Positions 1,511 through 62,328 of a stretch of 64,000 bases of DNA are shown here, piece by piece. Position numbers and translations under genes: made by a program. Origin of the DNA: Mobula birostris (lineage: Eukaryota); the NCBI RefSeq assembly GCF_030028105.1, contig NC_092379.1, forward strand, positions 45,804,150 through 45,868,149. The letters are read 5' to 3'. The notes under the pieces were generated by a model. The model searched no databases. It saw only the letters and a program-made list of their open reading frames with translations, and was not told the DNA's origin. Position 1 is the first letter of the stretch. Every line of letters begins with the position of its first letter.

Positions 1511-1858
1511 GCCGCTGAGTAAGCAGTTACAGCAGTTCACTCTAGCAGCATGTCAGCATTTTGCTGCACCTTCCGCCATTTTCCAGATACTGGAGACTGC
1601 AAGTTATATAACTTTGTGTAAAGACATTGTTGAATTCACTAAGTCATTGACCTCCACCCCTTTCATTCTTCTCTCTGTGACCCTTACATAGCTCCAGACC
1701 AGGTTTGGGTTTATTTCCTGAATCACAAAGTTCAAGTAGTGTTTCAGGGTTTTTTTTTCCCCCTAGGAACCTCTAGATCACCTAGATTCACTGAAGTTGA
1801 TTGCTTTTGTTCTTTTGTCCTCTCTCATGTACTTTATCATTTTGAATTTATTTCACAG

Positions 1859-3269
1859 GTTATTAGGGGAGGATTTGCTGATGGGAAGATTAATCCAAAC
1901 ATCAGGTCAAGATCTGAATGAGTTGGTCAGTTCATTCACCACTGAACACCGGTCATTAAACACAGAAGCAAAAAACACCATTCAGACTGGGAAGAAACAG
2001 TACGGATGTTCCTTGTGTGGGAAGGGTTTTACCCGATCTTACACGCTGCTGAGGCACCACCGAGTTCACACTGGGGAGAGGCCATACACCCGTTCGATAT
2101 GTGGGAAAGGCTTCATTTCTTCATCCAACCTACAGACGCACCAACTTGTTCACACTGACGCAAGACCTTTCAAATGCTCCGAATGTAAGAAGAGCTTTAA
2201 AAGCAGGGCTCATTTGTTGAAACACCGACAGACTCATACTGGAGAGAGACCATTTACCTGCTCTGTGTCTGAGAAGGGATTTAGTTCTTCATCTAACCTA
2301 CAAACACACTAACTTATTCACACCAATTTGAGACCTTTTAAATGTTCTCTATGTAAAAAGGGTTTTAAAAACAGCAGTGATCTGCTGAAACACCAGCACA
2401 CTCACAGTGGAGAGAGACCCTTCACATGTTCTGAGTTTGGTAAGGGATTCACTTCTTCATCCAAACTCACTGCACAACAAATTGTTCACACTGATGAGAG
2501 ACCATTTCAATGCTTTGACTGTGTGAAGAGCTTTAAAAGCAAACAAGAACTGCTGAAACATCAACGCACTCATACCCTAGAAAGGCCATTTACCTGCTCT
2601 CGATGTGGGAGGGGATTCACTCGACCATCCAGCCAACTGGCACACCAATGTACCAGGGCAGGTGAGAAGCTTTTTACTTGCTCTCTGTGTGAGAAAGGTT
2701 TCAAAAGTTCCCTTCAGCTCACCACTCACCAGTTTGTTCATAGCAATCAGGATCCGTTTCAGTTTACTGACCACAACAGGAACGATTTGCTGGTATGGCA
2801 TCATGCCTATGCTGGAGAGAGGTCATTCACCTGCCCAGTGTGTGGAAAAGGATTCACCCTGTCGTTCACACTGCTAAGACAACAACTCATTCACAGTGGA
2901 GAGAGGCCATTCGTTTGCTCTGTGTGTGGAAAGGGATTCACTTTGTCAGCCGACCTGTTGAAGCACCAGCGAATCCACACTGGAGAGAAACCTTTCAAAT
3001 GCACACTGTGTGGGAAGAAATTCAGATGTTCAACCAACCTTAATGTCCATCAACGTGTGCACACTGGGGAGAGGCCGTTTACATGCTCTGTCTGTGGGAA
3101 GGGATACATCCTGTCTTCTCACCTGCTGAGACATCAGCTTGTTCACACTGATCAGAGACCTTTTAAATGCTTTGACTGTGAGAAAAGCTTTAAACACAGA
3201 AATGATTTGCTGAGACACCAACGTACTCACATTTTGGAAAGGCCATTCGCCTGCTCTGTGTGTGGAAAG
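1859..3269 (+). pseudogene. C2H2 zinc-finger array exon, 5' part (fingers 1-16a); probable pseudogene
   Basis: Splice-acceptor-like tttcacag ends at 1858, with an in-frame ATG at 1881. Tandem CxxC...HxxxH fingers have TGERP-type linkers. There is an in-frame TAA at 2310-2312 (likely CAA>TAA) after which the same frame continues, several fingers have lost Cys/His ligands, and the exon is cut by an LTR at 3270. Confidence 0.9.
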
Positions 3270-3970
3270 TGTCATGTGTGACGCCAAGCAGAGCTGCAGG
3301 ATGGATGATGCTAATGAGAGAGATAACGGAAGACAATGGAGAAACATTCAAAATGCTAATAAGAGAGAAGAGAGAAATTAACTAGAAAGAAACACAATTC
3401 CGATGTTGGCATCTGCGACAGGCCGTTTGCTTTGAACCTGAACTGTTTGAAGTTTCATGGACAGCTGATACCCCAGCAGGGGGATAAAAAAGCAGGTTTG
3501 CTAAGGCATGGCACATACATGCTATGAGACCCTGGAAAGAGCATTGTGCCCCAGAAGGTGGTGGGAGTTTGGAGGACTGGTTCGCGGGAATTGCTCAGAG
3601 GCTCACAGGGTGAAAAGGTACTATCGGTGGGAACCTGGTGTGTGTCCGCCCTTGCCTCGGTGCCGGGTTCACCACGAAAGAACGATCGCATCCGGAACGG
3701 AGGGGTCACAGTCGGTGACCACAGCTGGATCAGAAGGCATCGAAAAGGTTTACCTGAAATCAACTTCATCTCTCTCTCTCTCTCTCTCTCTCTCTGTCCA
3801 ACGGTACAACAACAGAGATTACTTCGAACTGCACTAGACAGAACTGAACTCTGCTTCACTTAAGACTGATCATTTTACCCCTAGACTGCAATAGAGCTTG
3901 GTTGATTCCTATTACCCTATTTCTGTGTATATATGTATACTATCATTGCTAACCTGTTACATTTATATCC
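3270..3970 (+). repeat. 5' LTR (3'-truncated)
   Basis: Aligns to 8436-9161. It lacks the last ~123 nt and the PBS and runs directly into gag. Contains a (TC)n tract at ~3769-3794. Confidence 0.93.
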
Positions 3971-5028
3971 AAGGGGAGCTGGAGGTGGTGTCTATTAACA
4001 AACCTGGTGGGGAGGCAGTGCAGCTGCAGATGGAAAAATTAAGGCGTGAACATGAGTTCCGATTGAAGCAGTTAGAAAGGGAAGAGAGAGTAAAGCAGTT
4101 AGAACGAGGAGAGAGAGAGAAGGAAAGGGAGTTTGAGCTGGTGAAGTTAAGGATGGTGCTAGAGAGGGGCCAAATGCCGGACCAAGGTGGAGGGTTCAGG
4201 GCGACCCAGGAGGTTGGGTTGGTTCCCCCATTTGAGGAGGCCGATGTTGATCGGCACTTTCTACCTTTTGAAAATGTCGCTGCAAGTCAGGACTGGCCGA
4301 GGGATAAGTGGGCTGTTTTGCTTTAGAGCGTGCTTAAGGGGAAGGTTCAGCAAGCTTACTCAGCATTGTCAGCAGAAGATGCCCAGAGGTATGATGTGGT
4401 GAAATAGGCTATACTCAGGATTTATGAGTTGGTCCCAGAGGCATACCGGTAAAGGTTCCGGAATGTGAGGAAGCAGTGGGTCCGCGCGTATTTAGAGTTT
4501 GCCCGTGAGATGCAGATGTATTGTGAGTGTTGGTGCGCCTCGAAAGGAGTCACTGGGAATTATGACAAACTGCTACAGCTAATACCGATTGAGCAGTTTA
4601 AAGGTTGTGTCCCTAAAGGTATGAGGCCCTATGTGGATGAGAAAGAGGCAGAAATCTTAGCCGCAACTGCTAAGTTAGTGGATGAGTACGCGTTAAGACA
4701 CAAAGCAAAGTTTATCCCCAGCAAGAGCTACCAGAAGGGTAGTAGAGAGGGTGGAGAAAGTCCGCCGGCAAAGCCAGAAAGTAAGCCGGGGACTAGTGAG
4801 AAGGTTAAGGAAGACGGGAAGCAGTTTGGTAGGAAGTCTCCTGGGGTCGTATGCTATAATTGTGGGAAAGCCAGTCACATTGCGTCCAGATGTTTTGCCC
4901 CAAAGAAGGAGACGGGGAAAGGAAAAACGATGACTCCGACTGGCTGTATTGAGCCAGCAAACAAACCGCTAAGGGAGAAGAGGTCTGATAGAGTTCAGGA
5001 AGGGCACGAGAAGTTTATTTCGGCCTGA
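3971..5028 (+). pseudogene. Gmr1-like gag remnant with SCAN-like capsid CTD and CCHC zinc knuckle
   Basis: Reads PPFEEADVDRHF...W..LL; VPEAYR*RFRN...EQFKGCVPKGMRPYVDEK (SCAN-like, ~4432-4700); CYNCGKASHIASRC at 4852-4893. Has in-frame stops. Confidence 0.85.
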
Positions 5029-5400
5029 TTGGTGTCAGTGAAGGAAGGGTCTACCCCAGTTCCAGTACGGATCTGGAGAGACACTGGGGCTTGTCAGTCA
5101 TTGATCTTAAGGCGGGTGTTAGACTTTAGTGCAGAGACCGAGACTGGGGAGGTCAGTGTGATAAAAGACATTGGGAAAGGGACTGAAGCAGTACCTTTGC
5201 ACCAGATACATCTAAAAAGCAACTTGGTCTCTGGACCGGTCACGATAGGGGTGAGGCCCGAATTACTGATGGAAGACGTGGAGGTCTTACTCGGTAACGA
5301 CTTTGCAGGTGGAGATGTGTACCCAGCAGTAAAGCTGACGAGCCTGCCAGGACTGAGGACCCGCCGATGGACTCACAGGTTTATCCCGTTTGCGCAGTAA
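5029..5400 (+). pseudogene. Retrotransposon aspartic protease
   Basis: IWRDTGACQSLI active-site motif and downstream VLLGND motif. Confidence 0.85.
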
Positions 5401-5721
5401 CTTGACACATGTCGAGAAAGGCTGCCGAAGCGAAGGTAGATTTAGCTGAGACGTTTTTACCAGCCTTGTACCAGGAGGGGTTAGAAAGTGAGAAGAAGGA
5501 GCATTTTGGAGCAGAAGGAAGTGAGGGAGTTGAGGTAGATTTATCATTACTGAGAAGGAATTTATACAGGCACAGGAACGTGATGAGGGGCTGATAGTTT
5601 TGACAGAGACAGCTCTCTCCAAAGCAGAAATAAAAAGGGAACCAGTGGGCAATTATGTGAAGGAAGGAGTACTGATGAGGAAATGGGGACCAAGTACCGC
5701 GCCTGCAGATGAGGAGTTGGG

Positions 5722-6889
5722 GTGGTACACCAGGTGGTAGTGCCGAAAATTTATAGGGATGAGATTTTTAACCTGGCCCACAAGATACCCCTCGGTGGAC
5801 ATTTTGGGGTGAGGAAAACAGTCGATAGAATTATGAAGGAGTTTTACTGGCCGAACATGAGGAAGGATATTATTGAATATTGTAGACAGTGTCATTCCTG
5901 TCAGGTGGTAGGAAAGCCGAACCAGGTCCTGCCAAAAGCACCCCTTGGACCGATACCCGCTTTCGGAGAACCTTTTTCCTGAATAATTGTGGATTTTGTC
6001 AGTCCCCTGCCCAGAACTGCGAGTGGGCAAGAGTATGTGAAGACTATGATGTGCGCCACCACCAGGTTTTCGGAGGCGGTGCCCCTGGCAAGCGTCAAGG
6101 CTCCTGCAGTGGTAAAGGTGCTTGTGAAATTTTTCACTACGGTGGGGCTGCCAAGGGAAGTTCAGTCAGATCAGGGGAGTGTCTTCACATCTCACACATT
6201 CCTACAGATCTTGGATGAGATGGGAAAAGCAGCTTTTGGCCTCTGCGTACCACCCGGAGTCCCAAGGGGCATTGGAAAGATTCCATGCAACATTAAAGAC
6301 CATGATTAAAACTTATTGTCAAGAGGACGCTAGAGACTGGGATGATGCCTTGCCTCTCTTGTTATTTGCTGTAAGGGACATGGTTCAGGAGTCATTGGGG
6401 TTCAGCCCATTCGAGCTCATCTTCGGTCATTGGCCCAGAGGACCTCTGACCTTACTGAAAGAGCAATGGTCCAGTCCGACAGTACAAGTCAATGTGATTG
6501 ATTATGTTTTAAAATTTCGTGAGAGGCTTAAAAGGATCTGTGACCTTGCCAAAGAAAATCTACCAAACTCCCAAACAAAAATGAAACAGTGGTATGATAG
6601 ACGTGCCCGCGAACAAGTGTTTCAAGTGGGCAATAGGGTCTTAGATCTGTTTCCAGTGGTAACCAACCCCCTCCAGGGGAGATTCCACGGTCCGTACAAA
6701 GTGATTAAAAAGACAGACTTTTTGAATTATGTTATTGAAACACTGGACAGATGTAAGCCAACCCAATTAGTGCATATTAATATGTTAAAAGCTTACCACG
6801 ATAACAAAGCAGGTCTAGTCAGTGTTATCACAAAAATAAATGAGGCTGGGGTGCCAACTGATAAGGGAAAACCCATCTTGAAAAAATAA
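5722..6889 (+). pseudogene. Retrotransposon integrase (frameshifted)
   Basis: HHCC zinc motif AH..PLGGHFG...CRQCHSC, then DFVSPLP, QSDQGS, AYHPESQGALERFH and FHGPYKV across three frames. Confidence 0.92.
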
Positions 6890-7010
6890 ATATGGTACCG
6901 ACCAGATTGGAGAACTCTATTGTTTTGGCCAACTTTGCTGATAAGGTCTCTCACGTAACCCCTGAACAGAGCGAGCCGCTGATAAAGCTAATTAATCGGC
7001 GTGCAGGTGT

Positions 7011-8344
7011 ATGTCCAGATGCAAGGGGATGGTACATGATGTTGTTGTTACATCAGATCAGCCTATTAAGCAACACCCCTATAGGATGAACTTGGAGAAG
7101 GGCAAGCTAGTGGAGAGAGAAATTAAATGTATGCTAGCCACAGATATTATTAGGCCATCCAAATCGGAATGGGCTTCTCCCTGTGTGGTTGTCCCGAAAC
7201 CCAATGGGAGCATACGATTCTGTACAGATTACAGAAAGGTGAACACCATCACAAAAACTGATGCTTACCTCATCCCAAGGGTAGACAATTGCATTGATAA
7301 AGTGGGGAGAGATAAGTACATCACAAAGATCGATTTGCTAAAAGGGTACTGTTGTGTTCCTTTAACTGACCGGGTTAGAGAAATCTCAGCATTTGTCACT
7401 CCATCTGTGCTATACAAGTATAATGTTTTACTTTTTGGCATGAAGGACGCCCCAGGGACCTTCCAAAGGATGATTAATTCAGTGATAAAAGGGTTAAAGA
7501 ACGCAGAAGCATATATTGACGATTTAGTGGTCTGGAGTGACACGTGGGAGGAGCACATTGTGGCGGTAGAGGAACTGTTTAAACGGCTGTCTGAAGCCAA
7601 CCTGACAGTGAACCTTGCAAAAAGTGAGTTCGGCCACACTAATGTCAATTACCTGGGGTATGTGGTAGGACAGGGGCAGCTGGCACCGATGCAGGCTGAG
7701 GTGCAGGCTATCTCTGAAGTTTCCATCCCAACAGACAAGAGGGCCCTGAGAAGGTTCCTGGGGATGGTGGGGAACTATCGGAAGTTTTGCAAAAACTTTG
7801 CGGATATTACCCTCTCTCTTACTAAGCTCTTGCCAAAGAATGAGCAATTTGTGTGGTATGACCTTTGTCAACAAGCCCTCGAGAGTCTGAAGGTGATTCT
7901 GTGTCACCACCCTGTATTGAGTGCGCCTGACTTTTCAAAACCCTTCTCCCTAGCAACAGATGCTAGCGAAGAAGCAGCAGGGCGGTGCTGTTGCAGACAG
8001 ACAAAGAGGAAATTGAACACCCGGTGGCTTATTTTTCTAAGAAGTTTAATGTCCATCAGAGAAGTTATTCCACTGTGGAGAAGGAATTACTGGCAATCAT
8101 TCTGGCATTACAACATTTTGAAGTTTATATTTGTCCGGCACAGAAACCACTGCTAATTTACACTGATCACAATCCATTAGTGTTTTTGGCCACAACGAAG
8201 GATAAAAACAAACGCTTGTTAAGTTGGAGCCTGGTATTACAGGAATTTGATATTAAGATAAAACATATAAAAGGAACTGACAATGTGATTGCTGATTGTC
8301 TGTCCAGGTGTTATAACTTAACGTTTTCTGTATTAGCCGAATAG
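7011..8344 (+). pseudogene. Reverse transcriptase and RNase H
   Basis: SEWASPCVVVPKPNGSIRFCTDYRKVN, YIDD at 7512-7523, LATDAS, YSTVEKELLAI, YTDHNPL and NVIADCLSR motifs. Confidence 0.95.
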
Positions 8345-8435
8345 CTGATGACTACCTGTATATTAGCGTGTATCTTATAATGTGCATTCATGCCCATAAT
8401 TTTTACCCCGGTAAAAATCCTTTTAAGGGTGGAGG

Positions 8436-8935
8436 TGTCATGTGTGATGTGAAGCAGAGCTGCAGGACGGATAATGCTAATGAGAGAGATAACGGAAGAC
8501 AATGGAGAAACATTCAAAATGCTAATAAGAGAGAAGAGAGAGGTTAACGAGAAAGAAACACAATTCTGATGTTGGCGTCTGCGACAGGCCGTTTGCTTTG
8601 AACCTGAACTGTTTGAAGTTTGATGGACAGGTGATACCCCAGCAGGGGGATAAAAATAGCAGGTTTGCTAAGGCACGAGACACGCCACAAGACCCTGGAA
8701 AGAGCAGTGTGCCCCAGAAGGTGGTGGGAGTTTGGAGGACTGGTTTGCGGGAATTGCTCAGAGGCTCACAAGGTGAAAAGGTACAATGGGTGGGAATCTG
8801 GTGCGTGTCCGCCCTTGCCTGGGTGCCGGGTTCACCATGGAAGAACGATCGCATCCGGAATGGAGGGGTCACAGTCGGTGACCACAGCTGGATCAGAAGG
8901 CATCGAAAAGGTTTGCCTGAAACCAACTGCATCTC

Positions 8936-8993
<58 letters not shown>

Positions 8994-9284
8994 GGTAAAA
9001 CAACAGCGATTACTTCGAACTGCACTAGACTGAACTGAACTCTGCTTCACTTATGACTGATCATTTTATCCCTAGACTGCAATAGAGCTTGGTTGATTCT
9101 TATTACCCTATTTCTGTGTATATGTGTATACTTCCATTACTAACCTGTTATATTTATATCCTTGCGATTAGTGTACTGTATTACTTATTTCTTTTATAAA
9201 ACTTTATTATTTCCCAGTAATCACAGACTCCAAGACGTGTTCCATTTCTGCTGGTTTGGCAACCCAGTTACGGATTATGTAACA
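8436..9284 (+). repeat. 3' LTR (849 nt, complete)
   Basis: tgtcatgtgtga...tatgtaaca termini, preceded by a PPT; (TC)n tract at 8932-8989. Confidence 0.95.
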
Positions 9285-9288
9285 AAAG

Positions 9289-9564
9289 AAATTCACCCTT
9301 TCATCATATCTGCAAAGACACCAGCTCAATCACACTGGACAGAGGTCATTTACTTGCTCAGTGTGTGGGAAGGGATTCACACAGTCATCAACCCTGCTGA
9401 GACACCAACTCACACATACAGGAGAGTGGCCATTCACCTGCTCAGACTGTGGAAACGGATTCACTTGCAGTTCTCATCTCACTGAACATAAACATCTTCA
9501 CAGTGGTGAGAGATGGTTTCCTCTTTGTGTAAGGAAGGATTCAGTAGATGATCCAAGGATATGA
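9289..9564 (+). pseudogene. C2H2 zinc-finger array, 3' part (rest of finger 16, fingers 17-18, stop)
   Basis: Joining 3269 to 9289 gives in-frame FACSVCGK|[43 protein letters not shown]...; TGA ends at 9564. Confidence 0.92.
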
Positions 9565-12489: not shown

Positions 12490-13745
12490 TGACAGGAGTG
12501 AAGGTAGGACCGATTAGAGATAAAGGTGGGAAGATGTGCCTGGAGGCTGTGGAAGTGAGCGAGGTCCTCATTGAATACTTTTCTTCGATATGCACCAATA
12601 ACAGGGAACTTGATACTGGTGAGGGCAATATGACTGAGGTTGCTATTATGGTTGATGTAGATATTAAGGGAGAGGAGGTGTTGGAGTTATTAAAATACAT
12701 TAGGATGGACAAGTCCCCGGGGCCTGACAGAATATTCCCCAGGCTGCTCCATGAGGTGAGGGAAGAGATTGCTGAGCCTCTGGCTGGGTTCTTTATGTCC
12801 TTGTTTTCCATGGGAATGGTACCGGACAATTGGAGGGAGGCGAATGTTGTTCCCTTGTTCAAAAAAGGTAGTAGGGATAGTCCGGGTAATTATAGACCAG
12901 TGAGCCTTACATCTGTGGTGGGAAATCTATGGAAAAGATTCTTAAAGATAGGATCTATGGGTATTTAGAGAATCATGGTCTGATCAGGGACAGTCAGCAT
13001 GGCTTTGTGAAGGGCAGATCATGTCTAACAAGCCTGATAGAGTTCTTTGAGGAGGTGACCAGGCATATAGATGAGGGTAGTGCAGTGGATGTGATCTACA
13101 TAGATTTTAGTAAAGCATTTGACAAGGTTCCACACGGTTGGCTTATTCAGAAAGTCAGAAGGCAAGGGATCCAGGGAAGTTTGGCCAGGTGGATTCAGAA
13201 TTGGCTTGCTTGCAGAAGGCAGAGGGTCGTGCTGGAGGGAATACATTCAGATTGGAGGTTTGTGACTAGTGGTGTCCCACAAGGATCTGTTCTGGGAGCT
13301 CTACTCTTCGTGATTTTTATTAATGACCTGGATGTGGGGGTAGAAGGGTGGGTTGGCAAGTTTGCAGACGACACAAAGGTTGGTGGTGTTGTAGATAGTG
13401 TAGAGGATTGTTGCAGATTGCAGAGAGACACTGAGAGGATGCAGAAGTGGGCTGAGAAGTGGCACTTGGAGTTCAACCCGGAGAAGTGTGAGGTGGTACA
13501 CTTTGGAAGGACAAATTCAAGGCAGAGTACAAAGTAAATGGCAGGATACTTGGTAGTGTGGAGGAGCAGAGGGATCTGGGGGTACATGTCCACAGATCAC
13601 TGAAAGTTACCTCACAGGTAGATAGGGTAGTTAAGAAAGCCTATGGGGTGTTAGATTTCATAAGTCGAGGGATAGAGTTTAAGAGTCGCGATGTAATGAT
13701 GCAGTTAATTAAGTTAAGTTTTAATCTGAGAAATAAGGTTAAGTG
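12490..13745 (+). mobile_element. CR1 LINE RT fragment (younger, frameshifted)
   Basis: KSPGPDRIFPRLL, NYRPVSLTSVVG, QHGFVKGRSCLT, IDFSKAFDKVPH, GVPQGSVLG, KFADDTKVGG. Confidence 0.95.
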
Positions 13746-22142: not shown

Positions 22143-23460
22143 TCAGAATCAGAATCAGGTTTATTATCACCAGCATGTGATGTGAAATTTGTTACCTTAG
22201 CAGCAGCAATTCAATGCAATACATAATCTAGCAGAGAGAGAGAGAGAAAAAAAATAATAAAATAAAACATAATAATAAATAAACAAGTAAATCAATTATG
22301 TATTTTGAATAGATTACTAAAAGAAGTGCAAAAACAGAAATACTGCATATTAAAATAAGTGAGGTAGTGTCCAACGCTTCAAAGTCCATTTAGGAATCGG
22401 ATGGTAGCGGGGACAAAGCTGTTCCTGAATCACTGAGTGTGTGCCTTCAGGCTTCTGTATCTCCTACCTGATGGTAATAGTGAGAAAAGGGCATGCCCTG
22501 GGTGCTGGAGGTCTTTCATAATCGACGCTACCTTTCTGAGACACCACTCCCTAAAGACGTTTTGGGTACTTTGTGGGCTGGTGCCGAAGATGGAGCTGGC
22601 TAGATTTACAACCTTCTGCAGCTTCCTTTGGTCCTGTGCAGTAGCCCCTCCACACCAGACAGTGATGCAGCCTGTCTGAATGTTCTCCATGGTACAACTA
22701 CAGAAGGTTTTGAGTGGATTTGTTGACATGCCAAATCGCTTCAAACTCCTAATAAAGTATAGCCCCTGTCTTGCCTTCTTTATGACTACATCAACGTGTT
22801 GGGACCAGGTTAGATCCTCAGAGATCTTGACACCCAGGAACTTGAAGCTGCTCACTCTCTCCACTTCTGATCCCTCTATGAGGATTGATAAGTGTTCCCT
22901 CGTCTTACCCTTCCTGAAGTCTACAACCAGCTCTTTCGTCTTACTGATGTTGAATGCTAGGTTTATCCTGCAGCACCACTCCACTAGTTGGCATATCTCA
23001 CTCCTGTATGCCCTCTCGTCACCACCTGAGATTCTACCAACAATGGTTATATAGTCAGCAAATTTGTATGTGGCATTTGAGCTATGTCTAGCCGCACAAT
23101 CATGTGTATACAGAGAGTAGAGCAGTGGGCTAAGCACACACCCCTGAGGCGTGCTGGTGTTGATCATCAGTGAGGAGGATATGTTATCATCAATCTACAC
23201 AGATTGTTGTCTTCTCGTTAGGAAGTCAAGGAACCATTGACAGAGGGAGGTACATAGGCCTAGGTTGTGCAAATTCTCAATTAGGATTGTGGGAATGATG
23301 GTATTAAATGCTGAGCTCTCGTCGATAAACAGCATCCTGATATAGGGGTTTGTGTTGTCTAGGTGGTCTAAAGCTGTGTGAAGAGCCATGGAGATTGCAT
23401 CTGCTATTGACCTATTGTGACAATAGGCAAGTTGCAATGGGTCCAGGTCCTTTTGGTATG
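22143..23460 (-). mobile_element. Rex1/Babar-like LINE RT and 3' end
   Basis: [62 protein letters not shown]; (CAGAAT)n-type tail at ~22145. Confidence 0.92.
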
Positions 23461-31362: not shown

Positions 31363-33612
31363 CAACACACATCAAAGTTGCTGGTGAACGCAACAGGCCA
31401 GGCAGCATCTCTAGGAAGAGATACAGTGGACGTTTCAGGCAGAGACCATTCGTCAGGACTAACTGAAGGAAGAGTTAGTAAGAGATTTGTAAGTGGGAGG
31501 GGGAGGGGGAGATCCAAAATGATAGGAGAAGACAGGAGGGGGAGAGATGGAGCCAAGAGCTGGACAGGTGATTGGCAAAGGGGATATGAGAGGATCATGG
31601 GACAGGACATCCGGGGAAAAAGATAAGGGGGGGTGGAACACAGAGGATGGGCAAGGGGTATAGTCGGAGGGACAGAGGCAGAAAAAAGAGAGAAAGAGAA
31701 AGAATGTGTGTATAAAAATAAATAATGGATTGGGTACGAGGGGGAGGTGGGGCATTAGCGGAAGTTAGAGAAGTCAATGTTCATGCCATCAGGTTGGAGG
31801 GTACCCAGACGGAATATAAGGTGTTGTTCCTCCAACCTGAGTGTGGCTTCATCTTTACAGTAGAGGAGGCCGTGGATAGACATGTCAGAATGGGAATGGG
31901 ATGTGGAATTAAAATATGAGGCCACTGGGGGATCCTGCTTTCTCTGGCGGACAGAGCGTAGGTGTTCAGCAAAGCGGTCTCCCAGTCTGCATCGGGTCTC
32001 GCCAATATATAGAAGGCCACATTGGGAGCACCGGACACAGTATTTCACCCCAGCCAACTCACAGGTGAAGTGACGCCTCACCTGGAAGGACTGTTTGGGG
32101 CCCTGAATGGTGGGAAGGGAGGAAGTGTAAGGGTATGTGTAGCACTTGTTCCGCTCAATAAGTGCCAGGAGGGAGATCAGTGGGGAGGGATGAGGGGGAC
32201 AAATGGACAAGGGAGTCGCGTAGGGAGTGATCCCTGCAGAAAGCAGAGAAGTAGGGGAGGGAAAGATGTGCTTAGTGGTGGGATCCCGTTGGAGGTGGCA
32301 GAAGTTACGGAGAATAATATGTTGGACCCGGAGGCTGGTGGGGTGGTAGGTGAGGACCAGAGGAGCCCTATTCCTAGTGGGGTGGCGGGAGGATGGAGTA
32401 GAGCAGATGTGCGAGAAATGGGGGAGATGTGTTTGAGAGCAGAGTTGATGGTGGAGGAAGGGAAGCCCCTTTCTTTAAAAAAGGAAGACATCTCCCTCGT
32501 CCTGGAATGAAAAGCCTCATCCTGAGAGCAGATGCGGCGCAGATGGAGGAATTGCGAGAAGGGGATGGCATTTTTGCAAGAGACAGGGTGAGAAGAGGAA
32601 TAGTCCAGATAGCTGTGAGAGTCAGTAGGCTTATAGTAGACATCAGTGAATAAGCTGTCTCCAGAGATAGAGAGAGAAAGATCTAGAAAGGGGAGGGAGG
32701 TGTCGGAAATGGACCAAGTAAACTTGAGGGCAGGGTGAAAGTTGGAGGCAAAGTTAATAAAGTCGACGAGCTCAGCATGCGTGCAGGAAGCAGCACCACT
32801 GCAGTCGTCGATGTAGCAAAGGAAAAGTGGGGGACAGATACCAGAATAGGCACGGAACATAGATTGTTCCACAAAGCCAACAAAAAGGCAGGCATAGCTA
32901 GGACCCATACGGGTGCCCATACCAACACCTTTAGTTTGGAAGAAGTGGGAGGAGCCAAAGGAGAAATTATTAAGAGTAAGGACTAATTCCGCTAGGCGGA
33001 GCAGGATCTCCCAGTGGCCATACATTTTAATTCCACATCCCATTCCCATTCTGACATGTCTTTCCATGGCCTCCTCTACTGTAAAGATGAAGCCACACTC
33101 AGGTTGGAGGAACACCTTATATCCCATCTGGGTAGCCTCCAACTTGATGGCATGAACATCGACTTCTCTAACTTCCGCTAATGCCCCACCTCCCCCTCGT
33201 ACCCCATCCATTATTTATTTATATACACACATTCTTTCTCTCACTCTGCTTTTTCTCCCTCTGTCCCTCTCACTATACCCCTTGCCAATCCTCTGGGTTC
33301 CCCCTCCCCCGCTTGTCTTTTTCTCCAGAACTCCTGTCCCATGATCCTCTCATATCTCCTTTGCCAATCACCTGTCCAGCTCTTGGCTCCATCTCTCCCC
33401 CTCCTGTCTTCTCCTATCATTTTGGATCTCCCCCTCCCCCTCCCACTTTCAAATCTCTTACTAACTCTTCCAGCAGTTAGTCCTGATGAAGGGTCTCAGC
33501 CTGAAACGTCGACTGTACCTCTTCCTAGAGATGCTGCCTGGGCTGCTGCGTTCACCAGCAACTTTGATGTGTGTTGCTTGAATTTCCAGCATCTGCTGAA
33601 TTCCTGTCGTTT
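31363..33612 (-). mobile_element. Penelope-like element (RT C-half and GIY-YIG) with inverted pseudo-LTR
   Basis: RT LAELVLTLNNF..QTKGVGMGTRMGPSYACLF..YIDD..FLDLSL..YYKPTD; endonuclease CSQCGLLYIGETR.RLGDRFAEH..EEQHLIFRL. 576-nt inverted arms at 31363-31938 and 33001-33576; 17-nt TSD. Confidence 0.93.
33479..33514 (+). ncRNA. Minimal type I hammerhead ribozyme motif (PLE-associated)
   Basis: agtc-CTGATGA-AGG gtctcag CCT-GAAAC-GTC-gact: intact core, stem I agtc/gact, stem II AGG/CCT, palindromic ACGT stem III. Confidence 0.85.
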
Positions 33613-62178: not shown

Positions 62179-62328
62179 NNNNNNNNNNNNNNNNNNNNNN
62201 NNNNNNNNNNNNNNNNNNNNNNNNNNNNNNNNNNNNNNNNNNNNNNNNNNNNNNNNNNNNNNNNNNNNNNNNNNNNNNNNNNNNNNNNNNNNNNNNNNNN
62301 NNNNNNNNNNNNNNNNNNNNNNNNNNNN
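62179..62328. other. Assembly gap (150 N)
   Basis: Run of n. Confidence 1.

Follow-up and report, generated by a model that had tools for sequence, protein, structure and literature searches.

Gmr1-like elements are LTR retrotransposons of the Ty3/Gypsy type (Goodwin and Poulter 2002, cited in PMC8321522) that have been surveyed in 68 vertebrate genomes and are abundant in fish (10.1101/2025.03.03.638093). They are built from a SCAN-type gag, followed by the protease (PR), the integrase (IN), and the reverse transcriptase with RNase H (RT-RH) (10.1101/2025.03.03.638093). The SCAN domain of host genes originates from the gag of these elements (10.1101/2025.03.03.638093; PMC4592553; PMC8321522). 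It has a single origin in amniotes, where all host SCAN domains belong to one clade, and the SCAN zinc-finger (SCAN-ZNF) genes go back to the capture of an upstream element, resulting in the order SCAN-KRAB-ZF (10.1101/2025.03.03.638093). An initial annotation of the DNA analysed here had called the descent of this domain from Gmr1-like gag established, and it has indeed been published in the three studies on the host SCAN domain cited above.

Insertion of the element into a zinc-finger exon

The window, by which we mean the whole 64-kb stretch of DNA from the ray Mobula birostris that was analysed, contains a single copy of an LTR retrotransposon and a single zinc-finger (ZNF) array, and the former is inserted into the latter (Table 1). 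The element comprises 6,015 bp (3270-9284), lies in sense orientation relative to the C2H2 array, and is placed within finger 16. It has LTRs with TG...CA ends and is flanked on both sides by a short target-site duplication. If the local translation of 3240-3269 (RPFACSVCGK) is joined to that of 9289 onward, a perfect C-X2-C-X12-H-X3-H finger is restored, which is followed by two further fingers and the stop at which the host exon terminates (9562-9564). The start-to-start spacing of the 84-bp finger repeat across the element is 6187, which is 6019 + 2 x 84 with 6019 representing the element plus one duplication, and therefore the 84-bp period is exactly preserved. An independent count of the fingers likewise identifies the split finger as number 16. 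Thus, the sense-strand insertion into a C2H2 coding exon (3266-9288), the splitting of finger 16 by the duplicated AAAG, and the restored frame with fingers 17 and 18 upon excision, all of which the initial annotation had put forward, are borne out. We also considered an assembly artefact and rejected it because a misjoin would not yield a target-site duplication, a restored finger, and a preserved period. With the element in place, the reading frame of the host ends three codons into the 5' LTR (stop 3279-3281).

Table 1. Features of the zinc-finger exon and of the inserted retrotransposon in the window
Feature	Position	Strand	Remarks
5' part of the host C2H2 zinc-finger exon	1859-3269	+	Fingers 1-15 and first 8 residues of finger 16; zf-C2H2 profile matches
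Target-site duplication, left copy	3266-3269	.	AAAG, 4 bp
5' LTR, truncated	3270-3970	+	Begins TGTCATG; matches positions 1-726 of the 3' LTR
gag remnant	3971-5025	+	Coiled-coil N-part, CA C-terminal domain, CCHC zinc knuckle
CCHC zinc knuckle of gag	4849-4893		
Aspartic protease remnant	5029-5397	+	DTGA motif at 5080-5091; motif and alignment to relatives
Integrase, 5' of RT	5740-6847	+	Pfam and alignment to relatives
Integrase_H2C2	5740-5910		
rve core	5992-6225		Continues in another frame
Integrase_p58_C / SH3	6689-6790		
Reverse transcriptase and Ty3/Gypsy-type RNase H	7014-8308	+	Pfam
RVT_1	7191-7664		YIDD present
RNase H (RT_RNaseH)	7854-8308		
Polypurine tract (PPT)	8425-8435	+	AAGGGTGGAGG; directly abuts the 3' LTR; read from the sequence
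3' LTR, complete	8436-9284	+	849 bp, TGT...ACA, expanded (CT)n run
Target-site duplication, right copy	9285-9288	.	AAAG, 4 bp
3' part of the host exon	9289-9564	+	Rest of finger 16, fingers 17-18, 16-residue tail

The host exon encodes 18 tandem C2H2 units of 28 residues (84 bp) each, which are connected by H/C links and match the zf-C2H2 and zf-H2C2_2 profiles. In a profile search with the ZNF pieces on either side of 2962-3003, zf-C2H2 was matched with E-values of 1e-15 to 1e-23. Finger 1 is preceded by a spacer, and an AG at 1857-1858 together with a pyrimidine tract forms the putative splice acceptor. The features of a functional tandem C2H2 gene, an uninterrupted frame and complete zinc ligands, are no longer present. 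A stop falls in-frame into finger 4 (2310-2312), one or more zinc ligands are missing in fingers 2, 4, 6, 8, 10, and 11, and at least seven ligands have been lost across the exon, to which the 6-kb insertion in finger 16 adds. Fingers 12-18, which surround the insertion, are all intact. The host zinc-finger gene is dead and decayed.

Organisation, decay, and affiliation of the retrotransposon

The element has the order gag-PR-IN-RT-RNase H, and only the PPT and the 3' LTR, but no integrase, follow the RNase H. As had been recognised before, the integrase domains (5740-6790) precede the RT. The RT, RNase H, and integrase are of the Ty3/Gypsy type and not of the Copia type: Pfam scores are 102 bits for RVT_1, 95 bits for RT_RNaseH, 81 bits for Integrase_H2C2, and 38 bits for rve, and Pfam gave no RVT_2 (Copia-type) match in the element. 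The protease remnant is without a Pfam match. In a tblastn search the closest intact relative (P0005) was covered colinearly from amino acid 123 to 1550.

On the 5' side of the element the last 123 bp of the 5' LTR, the primer-binding site (PBS), and the start of gag have been deleted. Five in-frame stops are found, of which three interrupt gag (4324, 4405, and 4450), one terminates it (5026), and one lies in the integrase (5980). In addition, there are about seven frame changes, which affect, among others, the integrase and, at about 7982-8009, the RT/RNase H region. The two LTRs are 93.7% identical over 697 aligned columns (K2P 0.066). This copy of the retrotransposon is dead, probably for a long time. 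It has decayed, as had been stated, through stops, frame changes, and the loss of the 5' LTR end together with the PBS, and is not itself a SCAN-ZNF gene. The deletion in the 5' LTR and the damage to the zinc-finger exon had not been mentioned in the initial annotation.

The SCAN-like segment that had been suspected in gag at about 4432-4700 is matched by the Pfam SCAN profile at 4453-4704 (E 6.8e-10, 39 bits with a gathering threshold of 27, covering positions 7-88 of the 90 in the profile). The homology begins at about 4432, and the three stops interrupting gag are located within or just ahead of the segment. Its predicted fold is that of a capsid C-terminal domain (CA-CTD; pLDDT 89-96). With VIA-align the model aligns to the CA-CTDs of RSV, MLV, PEG10, and PNMA2 with Z-scores of 8-9 and an rmsd of 2.4-3.1 over 73-78 residues, and to SCAN domains, whose sequence identities exceed all others listed, with Z-scores of 5-6. 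The fold assignment is based on the Z-scores of 8-9, which are middling for helical domains, and on the uniform list of CA-CTDs. A Foldseek search with the model of the segment gave no match at E 0.001 or better. In single-sequence phmmer searches against the PDB, the top three matches of an 86-residue gag piece are SCAN domains, at E-values of only 0.06-0.7, and a 191-residue gag piece matched retroviral nucleocapsid knuckles only, and no SCAN domain, at E 0.01. We regard the homology of the gag CA-CTD to SCAN, and of the segment to both, as supported.

In a quick LG+G4 tree the RT of the window falls into a clade of 53 rows with an SH-aLRT support of 99. Apart from the window itself, this clade consists of 44 elements with the integrase first and 8 fragments, and none of its rows has the RT first. 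Thus, the integrase precedes the RT in 44 of 44 relatives with readable order, and two cases outside the clade that seem to deviate are gene models fused in tandem. All six intact relatives that were scanned with Pfam have the order SCAN - H2C2 - rve - p58_C - RVT_1 - RNaseH. Because of the integrase-first order, the SCAN-type gag, and an RT within an integrase-first clade, the element is Gmr1-like, as proposed before, an assignment that is supported by organisation and RT kinship in a tree whose rows do not include a named Gmr1 reference (the type element is from Atlantic cod).

Origin of the locus

The locus is best explained by a single, ordinary insertion of a Gmr1-like element into a ZNF exon, after which both decayed to a relic without present function. 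We assign a probability of roughly 0.88 to this reading, according to which the nearness of gag and zinc fingers would be coincidental. A Gmr1-like Ty3/Gypsy element would have integrated once, and the usual staggered cut of its integrase would have led to the 4-bp duplication. The target would have been a gene from the C2H2 zinc-finger family of the ray, hit in the same orientation in its last exon, which encodes the fingers. As the reading frame reaches a stop after three LTR codons, the insertion should have ended the protein after finger 15. Element and exon may then both have decayed without selection, and the SCAN-like gag beside the fingers would be a coincidence of this one event.

It is unlikely, although still worth considering, that the exon was already a pseudogene at the time of insertion, in which case nothing would have been disrupted. 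Large ZNF families contain many pseudogenes, and this exon contains a stop and lacks many ligands. However, if a neutral change of 3.3% per lineage since the insertion is estimated, about 6 ligand losses on the 216 ligand-codon bases and 2-3 stops would be expected. The predicted damage is close to what is observed and therefore the ZNF gene could still have been alive when the element inserted. The intact state of the seven fingers around the insertion also speaks against a pseudogene as target.

The initial annotation went further and saw in the locus a snapshot of the event behind the SCAN-ZNF genes and in ZNF clusters a recurrent landing site. It is very improbable that Gmr1-like elements favour ZNF genes or clusters, that gag and ZNF neighbours recur, and that the present locus is an instance of the process from which SCAN-ZNF genes emerged. 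The element does sit in a ZNF exon, which occupies only about 3% of the window once the element is left aside, and according to the published work the host SCAN domain arose when a ZNF gene captured a Gmr1-like gag. However, a window with a single ZNF array and a single copy of the element is one case without a denominator. Neither the integrase of the window nor the six intact relatives contain a chromodomain or another recognisable targeting module, and fusions to C2H2 fingers were found in none of the 150 nearest RT relatives. Furthermore, the host SCAN domain has a single amniote origin from an upstream element despite the abundance of Gmr1-like elements in fish (10.1101/2025.03.03.638093). 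The claim of a snapshot or recurrent landing site depends on one co-occurrence, in which the topology is reversed and gag and ZNF are riddled with stops, and it is not upheld. It is slightly less probable still that integration favours the 3' exons in which ZNF genes encode their fingers, for instance through the special chromatin there, and that gag-ZNF juxtapositions recur in fishes with the amniote SCAN-ZNF genes being one fixed outcome. If the family did land in ZNF genes above chance, this would provide a mechanism by which a transposon capsid domain could become the partner of zinc-finger arrays. The locus itself shows nothing on how SCAN zinc-finger genes arose and adds no weight to the landing-site idea.

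It is hard to believe that the locus still works, either through a truncated 15-finger protein with termination and polyadenylation in the 5' LTR, or through an LTR-driven or chimeric transcript (exaptation in progress). In favour of this are the sense orientation, the closure of the frame shortly into the LTR, a 3' LTR from which transcription could in principle extend into fingers 17-18, and the presence of part of 1700-3700 in possible RNA runs. Against it, the stop and six fingers with lost ligands lie upstream of the insertion, the SCAN-like segment is itself broken, and the damage is compatible with neutral decay after the insertion. Of the words sampled from 1700-3700, 15-20% occur in some runs of the same species that are probably RNA, and they may come from any part of this region. 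With 0.09-0.20, the word shares are small both in runs that may be RNA and in those of other species, and DNA runs of the source species were found as well.

The locus is a tidy and fully resolved case of a retrotransposon group that is already known, here in the genome of a ray, and it matters little as it stands. Caution is needed in annotation, where a gene caller could mistake the element for an intron or predict a SCAN-plus-ZNF gene that does not exist.

The locus among known systems

The element shares with the Gmr1-like elements the LTRs and the short target-site duplication, the gypsy-type RT, RNase H, and integrase, the integrase in front of the RT, and a gag matching SCAN. It differs in that the copy is dead and lacks the end of the 5' LTR, the PBS, and the start of gag, and in its host, which is a cartilaginous fish. 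A literature search for Gmr1 in cartilaginous fishes returned nothing relevant, which is weak evidence of anything.

To the amniote SCAN zinc-finger genes (SZFP/SKZFP, with SCAN structures of ZNF24, MZF1, and PEG3) the locus is similar in that the segment of gag at 4453-4704 is a SCAN homologue and adjoins C2H2 fingers on the same strand. However, in the amniote SZFPs the SCAN domain is N-terminal to the fingers in one open frame, whereas in the window the segment is found 3' of fingers 1-16, the reverse arrangement, in agreement with the earlier remark that gag lies downstream of most fingers. It is part of a transposon gag behind a frame-stopping LTR, and the stops at 3279-3281, 4324, 4405, and 4450 separate or break what would have to be one frame. 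The locus is not a member of the amniote SCAN zinc-finger family, and the complete gag-pol around the segment argues against membership in the amniote host SCAN clade.

The locus also resembles transposable elements inserted into exons of expendable multi-copy families, which they disrupt. As in those cases, a coding exon of a large family with fast turnover carries a clean insertion flanked by a target-site duplication, and both parts have decayed jointly. The only difference is a coincidence, namely that the gag of the inserted element gave rise in evolution to a domain found together with ZNFs in amniotes.

Insertion of the element into a zinc-finger array

Two direct repeats spaced by about 5.17 kb in the window form the long terminal repeats (LTRs) of a Gmr1-like retrotransposon, which splits a C2H2 zinc-finger exon. 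If bases 3240-3269 are joined to 9289 onward, the translation continues from RPFACSVCGK into a perfect C-X2-C-X12-H-X3-H finger, followed by two further fingers and the stop codon at 9562-9564. The split finger is number 16 also by a separate count of the array. The 84-bp finger repeat keeps its period across the element, because the spacing of 6187 exceeds the 6019 of the element and one duplication by exactly two periods. The 4-bp match of the target-site duplication has by itself a chance of 1 in 256; combined with the recovered finger and the kept period, it excludes both chance and misassembly. The host sequence independently confirms the insertion, and the initial annotation, which had an exact AAAG splitting finger 16 and a frame restored on excision with fingers 17-18 added, agrees with translation and period alike.

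Features of the element and its insertion site. Domains are from Pfam scans of plus-strand stop-to-stop pieces.
Feature	Position	Strand	Remarks
Target-site duplication AAAG	3266-3269 and 9285-9288		flanks both TGT...ACA termini
5' LTR start	TGTCATG at 3270	+	directly 3' of ...TGTGGAAAG (base-level reading)
SCAN	4453-4704	+	E 6.8e-10, 39 bits, curated cut-off 27; profile 7-88 of 90
zf-CCHC	4849-4893	+	weak match, 17.9 bits, under its 20.8-bit cut-off
DTGA protease motif	5080-5091	+	motif reading, without Pfam match
Integrase_H2C2	5740-5910	+	81 bits
rve	from 5992	+	38 bits
Integrase_p58_C	6689-6790	+	33 bits
RVT_1	7191-7664	+	102 bits; YIDD present
RT_RNaseH	to about 8308	+	95 bits
Polypurine run (PPT) AAGGGTGGAGG	8425-8435	+	abuts 3' LTR
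3' LTR	8436-9284	+	ends ...TGTAACA, then AAAGAAATTC (base-level reading)
In-frame stops of the element	4324, 4405, 4450, 5026, 5980	+	

A pyrimidine tract and an AG at 1857-1858 suggest a putative splice acceptor, and the host exon is thus probably the usual last exon with a spacer and 18 fingers. Pfam returned zf-C2H2 on all searched zinc-finger pieces (pieces beside 2962-3003). The array is damaged by an in-frame stop at 2310-2312 within finger 4 and by the loss of zinc ligands from six fingers: finger 2 lacks its first Cys, finger 4 its second Cys, finger 6 its second Cys and its first His, finger 8 its histidines (where there is also an indel), and finger 11 its first His; finger 10 is shortened and has no cysteines. 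The host frame closes three codons into the 5' LTR. At 3.3% change per lineage, which is half the LTR divergence, about six ligand losses are predicted over the 216 ligand-codon bases, and two or three stops over 1.7 kb. Predicted and seen losses are similar, and the damage therefore matches what neutral decay after the insertion would produce. The element may have hit a live exon, but the target could also have been dead already. In the stretch 1700-3700, 9-17% of the sampled 31-mers are present in sequencing runs of seven other organisms, which could reflect the LTR family or conserved finger DNA among related rays.

Domain order and kinship of the reverse transcriptase

The integrase (IN) domains precede the reverse transcriptase (RT), as had been read from the bases, and RNase H (RH) is directly followed by the polypurine run and the 3' LTR. 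The resulting order gag-PR-IN-RT-RH, with enzymes of the Gypsy and not the Copia type, is the hallmark of Gmr1-like elements (10.1101/2025.03.03.638093). The RT piece was searched against 1.84 billion representatives, the best 150 matches were kept, and the SCAN, IN, RT, and RNase H pieces of the element were mapped onto them by local phmmer. Every readable match among these 150 with a single RT match of at least about 286 bits (41-58% identity) has the order H2C2-IN core-RT-RH, RT-RH being C-terminal, and the SCAN piece matches the majority of the long ones as well. In contrast, RT matches of at most about 245 bits (about 30-39% identity) all show the usual RT-RH-IN order; these owe their place in the list to fused gene models carrying several RTs. 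Many of the top matches are gene models of 2000-3500 residues in which two to five copies of Gypsy pol are fused in series. Such models are annotation artefacts; their summed scores place them above genuine close relatives, and domain orders read from them can be misleading.

A quick maximum-likelihood tree (LG+G4, 146 RT domains) places the RT of the window in a clade (SH-aLRT 99) with 44 IN-first rows, eight fragments of unreadable order, and no RT-first row. Two seemingly IN-first rows outside this clade (P0002 and P0122) come from gene models fused in tandem, where the integrase lying upstream belongs to the preceding element. The six intact relatives scanned with Pfam (1493-1608 residues) all read SCAN - Integrase_H2C2 - rve - Integrase_p58_C - RVT_1 - RT_RNaseH, two of them with a zf-CCHC match. 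The nearest, P0005, is 58% identical in RT, and its residues 123-1550 are colinear with 4216-8308. RT kinship had been set beforehand as a refuting test; because the tree holds no named Gmr1 sequence, the element is assigned by its defining organisation together with its kinship to IN-first elements, and on both counts it is confirmed as Gmr1-like.

Two further RT remnants in the window, at 12929-13537 (plus strand, RVT_1, 99 bits) and 22430-23167 (minus strand, RVT_1, 32 bits, adjoined by an ALKBH8_N-type match), are probably LINE copies unrelated to the Gmr1-like element. A 344-residue ORF at 32177-33211 (minus strand) has no Pfam match at E 0.01, and 62179-62328 is a run of 150 N, an assembly gap or masked stretch.

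The SCAN-like segment of gag

The Pfam SCAN match lies where a SCAN-like segment had been suspected (about 4432-4700) and scores above its cut-off. Against PDB sequences, an 86-residue piece retrieved as its top three the SCAN domains of ZNF24, PEG3, and MZF1 in the correct register but only at E 0.06-0.7, while a longer gag piece retrieved nucleocapsid knuckles only, at E 0.01. The AlphaFold model computed with 20 relatives has four helices and a pLDDT of 89-96 across residues 1-80. Foldseek gave no significant match for this model. VIA-align matched the model uniformly to capsid C-terminal domains (RSV, MLV, PEG10, PNMA2, HTLV-1, MOAP1, and Arc; Z 7.7-9.0, rmsd 2.4-3.4, 73-85 residues), followed by SCAN domains at Z 5.1-6.0, whose identities of 18-24% are the highest in the list. 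For helical domains such Z values are only intermediate, but the list is consistent and agrees with the Pfam SCAN score, and together profile and predicted fold identify the segment as the C-terminal (dimerisation) domain of the gag capsid (CA) and a SCAN homologue. Work cited in PMC11011659, PMC8321522, and PMC4592553 (Ivanov 2005; Emerson and Thomas 2011) agrees with this identification. The published origin of SCAN from Gmr1-like gag is as stated in the initial annotation.

Decay of the element and relation to SCAN-ZNF genes

The element is dead, and the copy is decayed as described earlier: in addition to five in-frame stops, about seven frame changes interrupt the coding sequence from 5360 to 8010, and the 5' LTR is truncated. 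It matches only positions 1-726 of the 849-bp 3' LTR; the last 123 bp are absent together with the primer-binding site, and gag appears to have lost roughly its first 40 codons, judging from the alignment to P0005. Of the 697 sites aligned between the two LTRs, 44 differ, 28 of them by transitions, of which 10 are in CpG context; this corresponds to K2P 0.066. An assumed rate of 1 to 2.5 x 10^-9 changes per site and year would date the insertion to about 13-33 million years ago, and slower ray rates would make it older. The (CT)n microsatellite of the LTR (3774-3797 and 8926-8990) is 28 bp longer in the 3' copy and has therefore changed after insertion.

The insertion itself is confirmed as first observed, and it is an ordinary relic. 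The evolutionary reading attached to it, a snapshot of gag arriving next to a zinc-finger (ZNF) gene with ZNF clusters as a recurrent landing site, is unsupported. Within the window there is one ZNF array with one element copy, and nothing beyond this single case. Pfam found no chromodomain or other recognisable targeting module in the integrase of the element or of the six relatives, and C2H2 fingers occur in none of the best 150 RT relatives. In addition, a preprint infers that a KRAB-ZNF gene captured an upstream element, resulting in the order SCAN-KRAB-ZF, and that all host SCANs have a single amniote origin, with Gmr1-like elements being abundant in fish (10.1101/2025.03.03.638093). Upstream capture and a single amniote origin weaken the analogy with this locus. 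In SCAN-KRAB-ZF genes SCAN comes first, whereas in the ray 16 fingers and an LTR precede the SCAN-like segment, and gag and ZNF are both broken.
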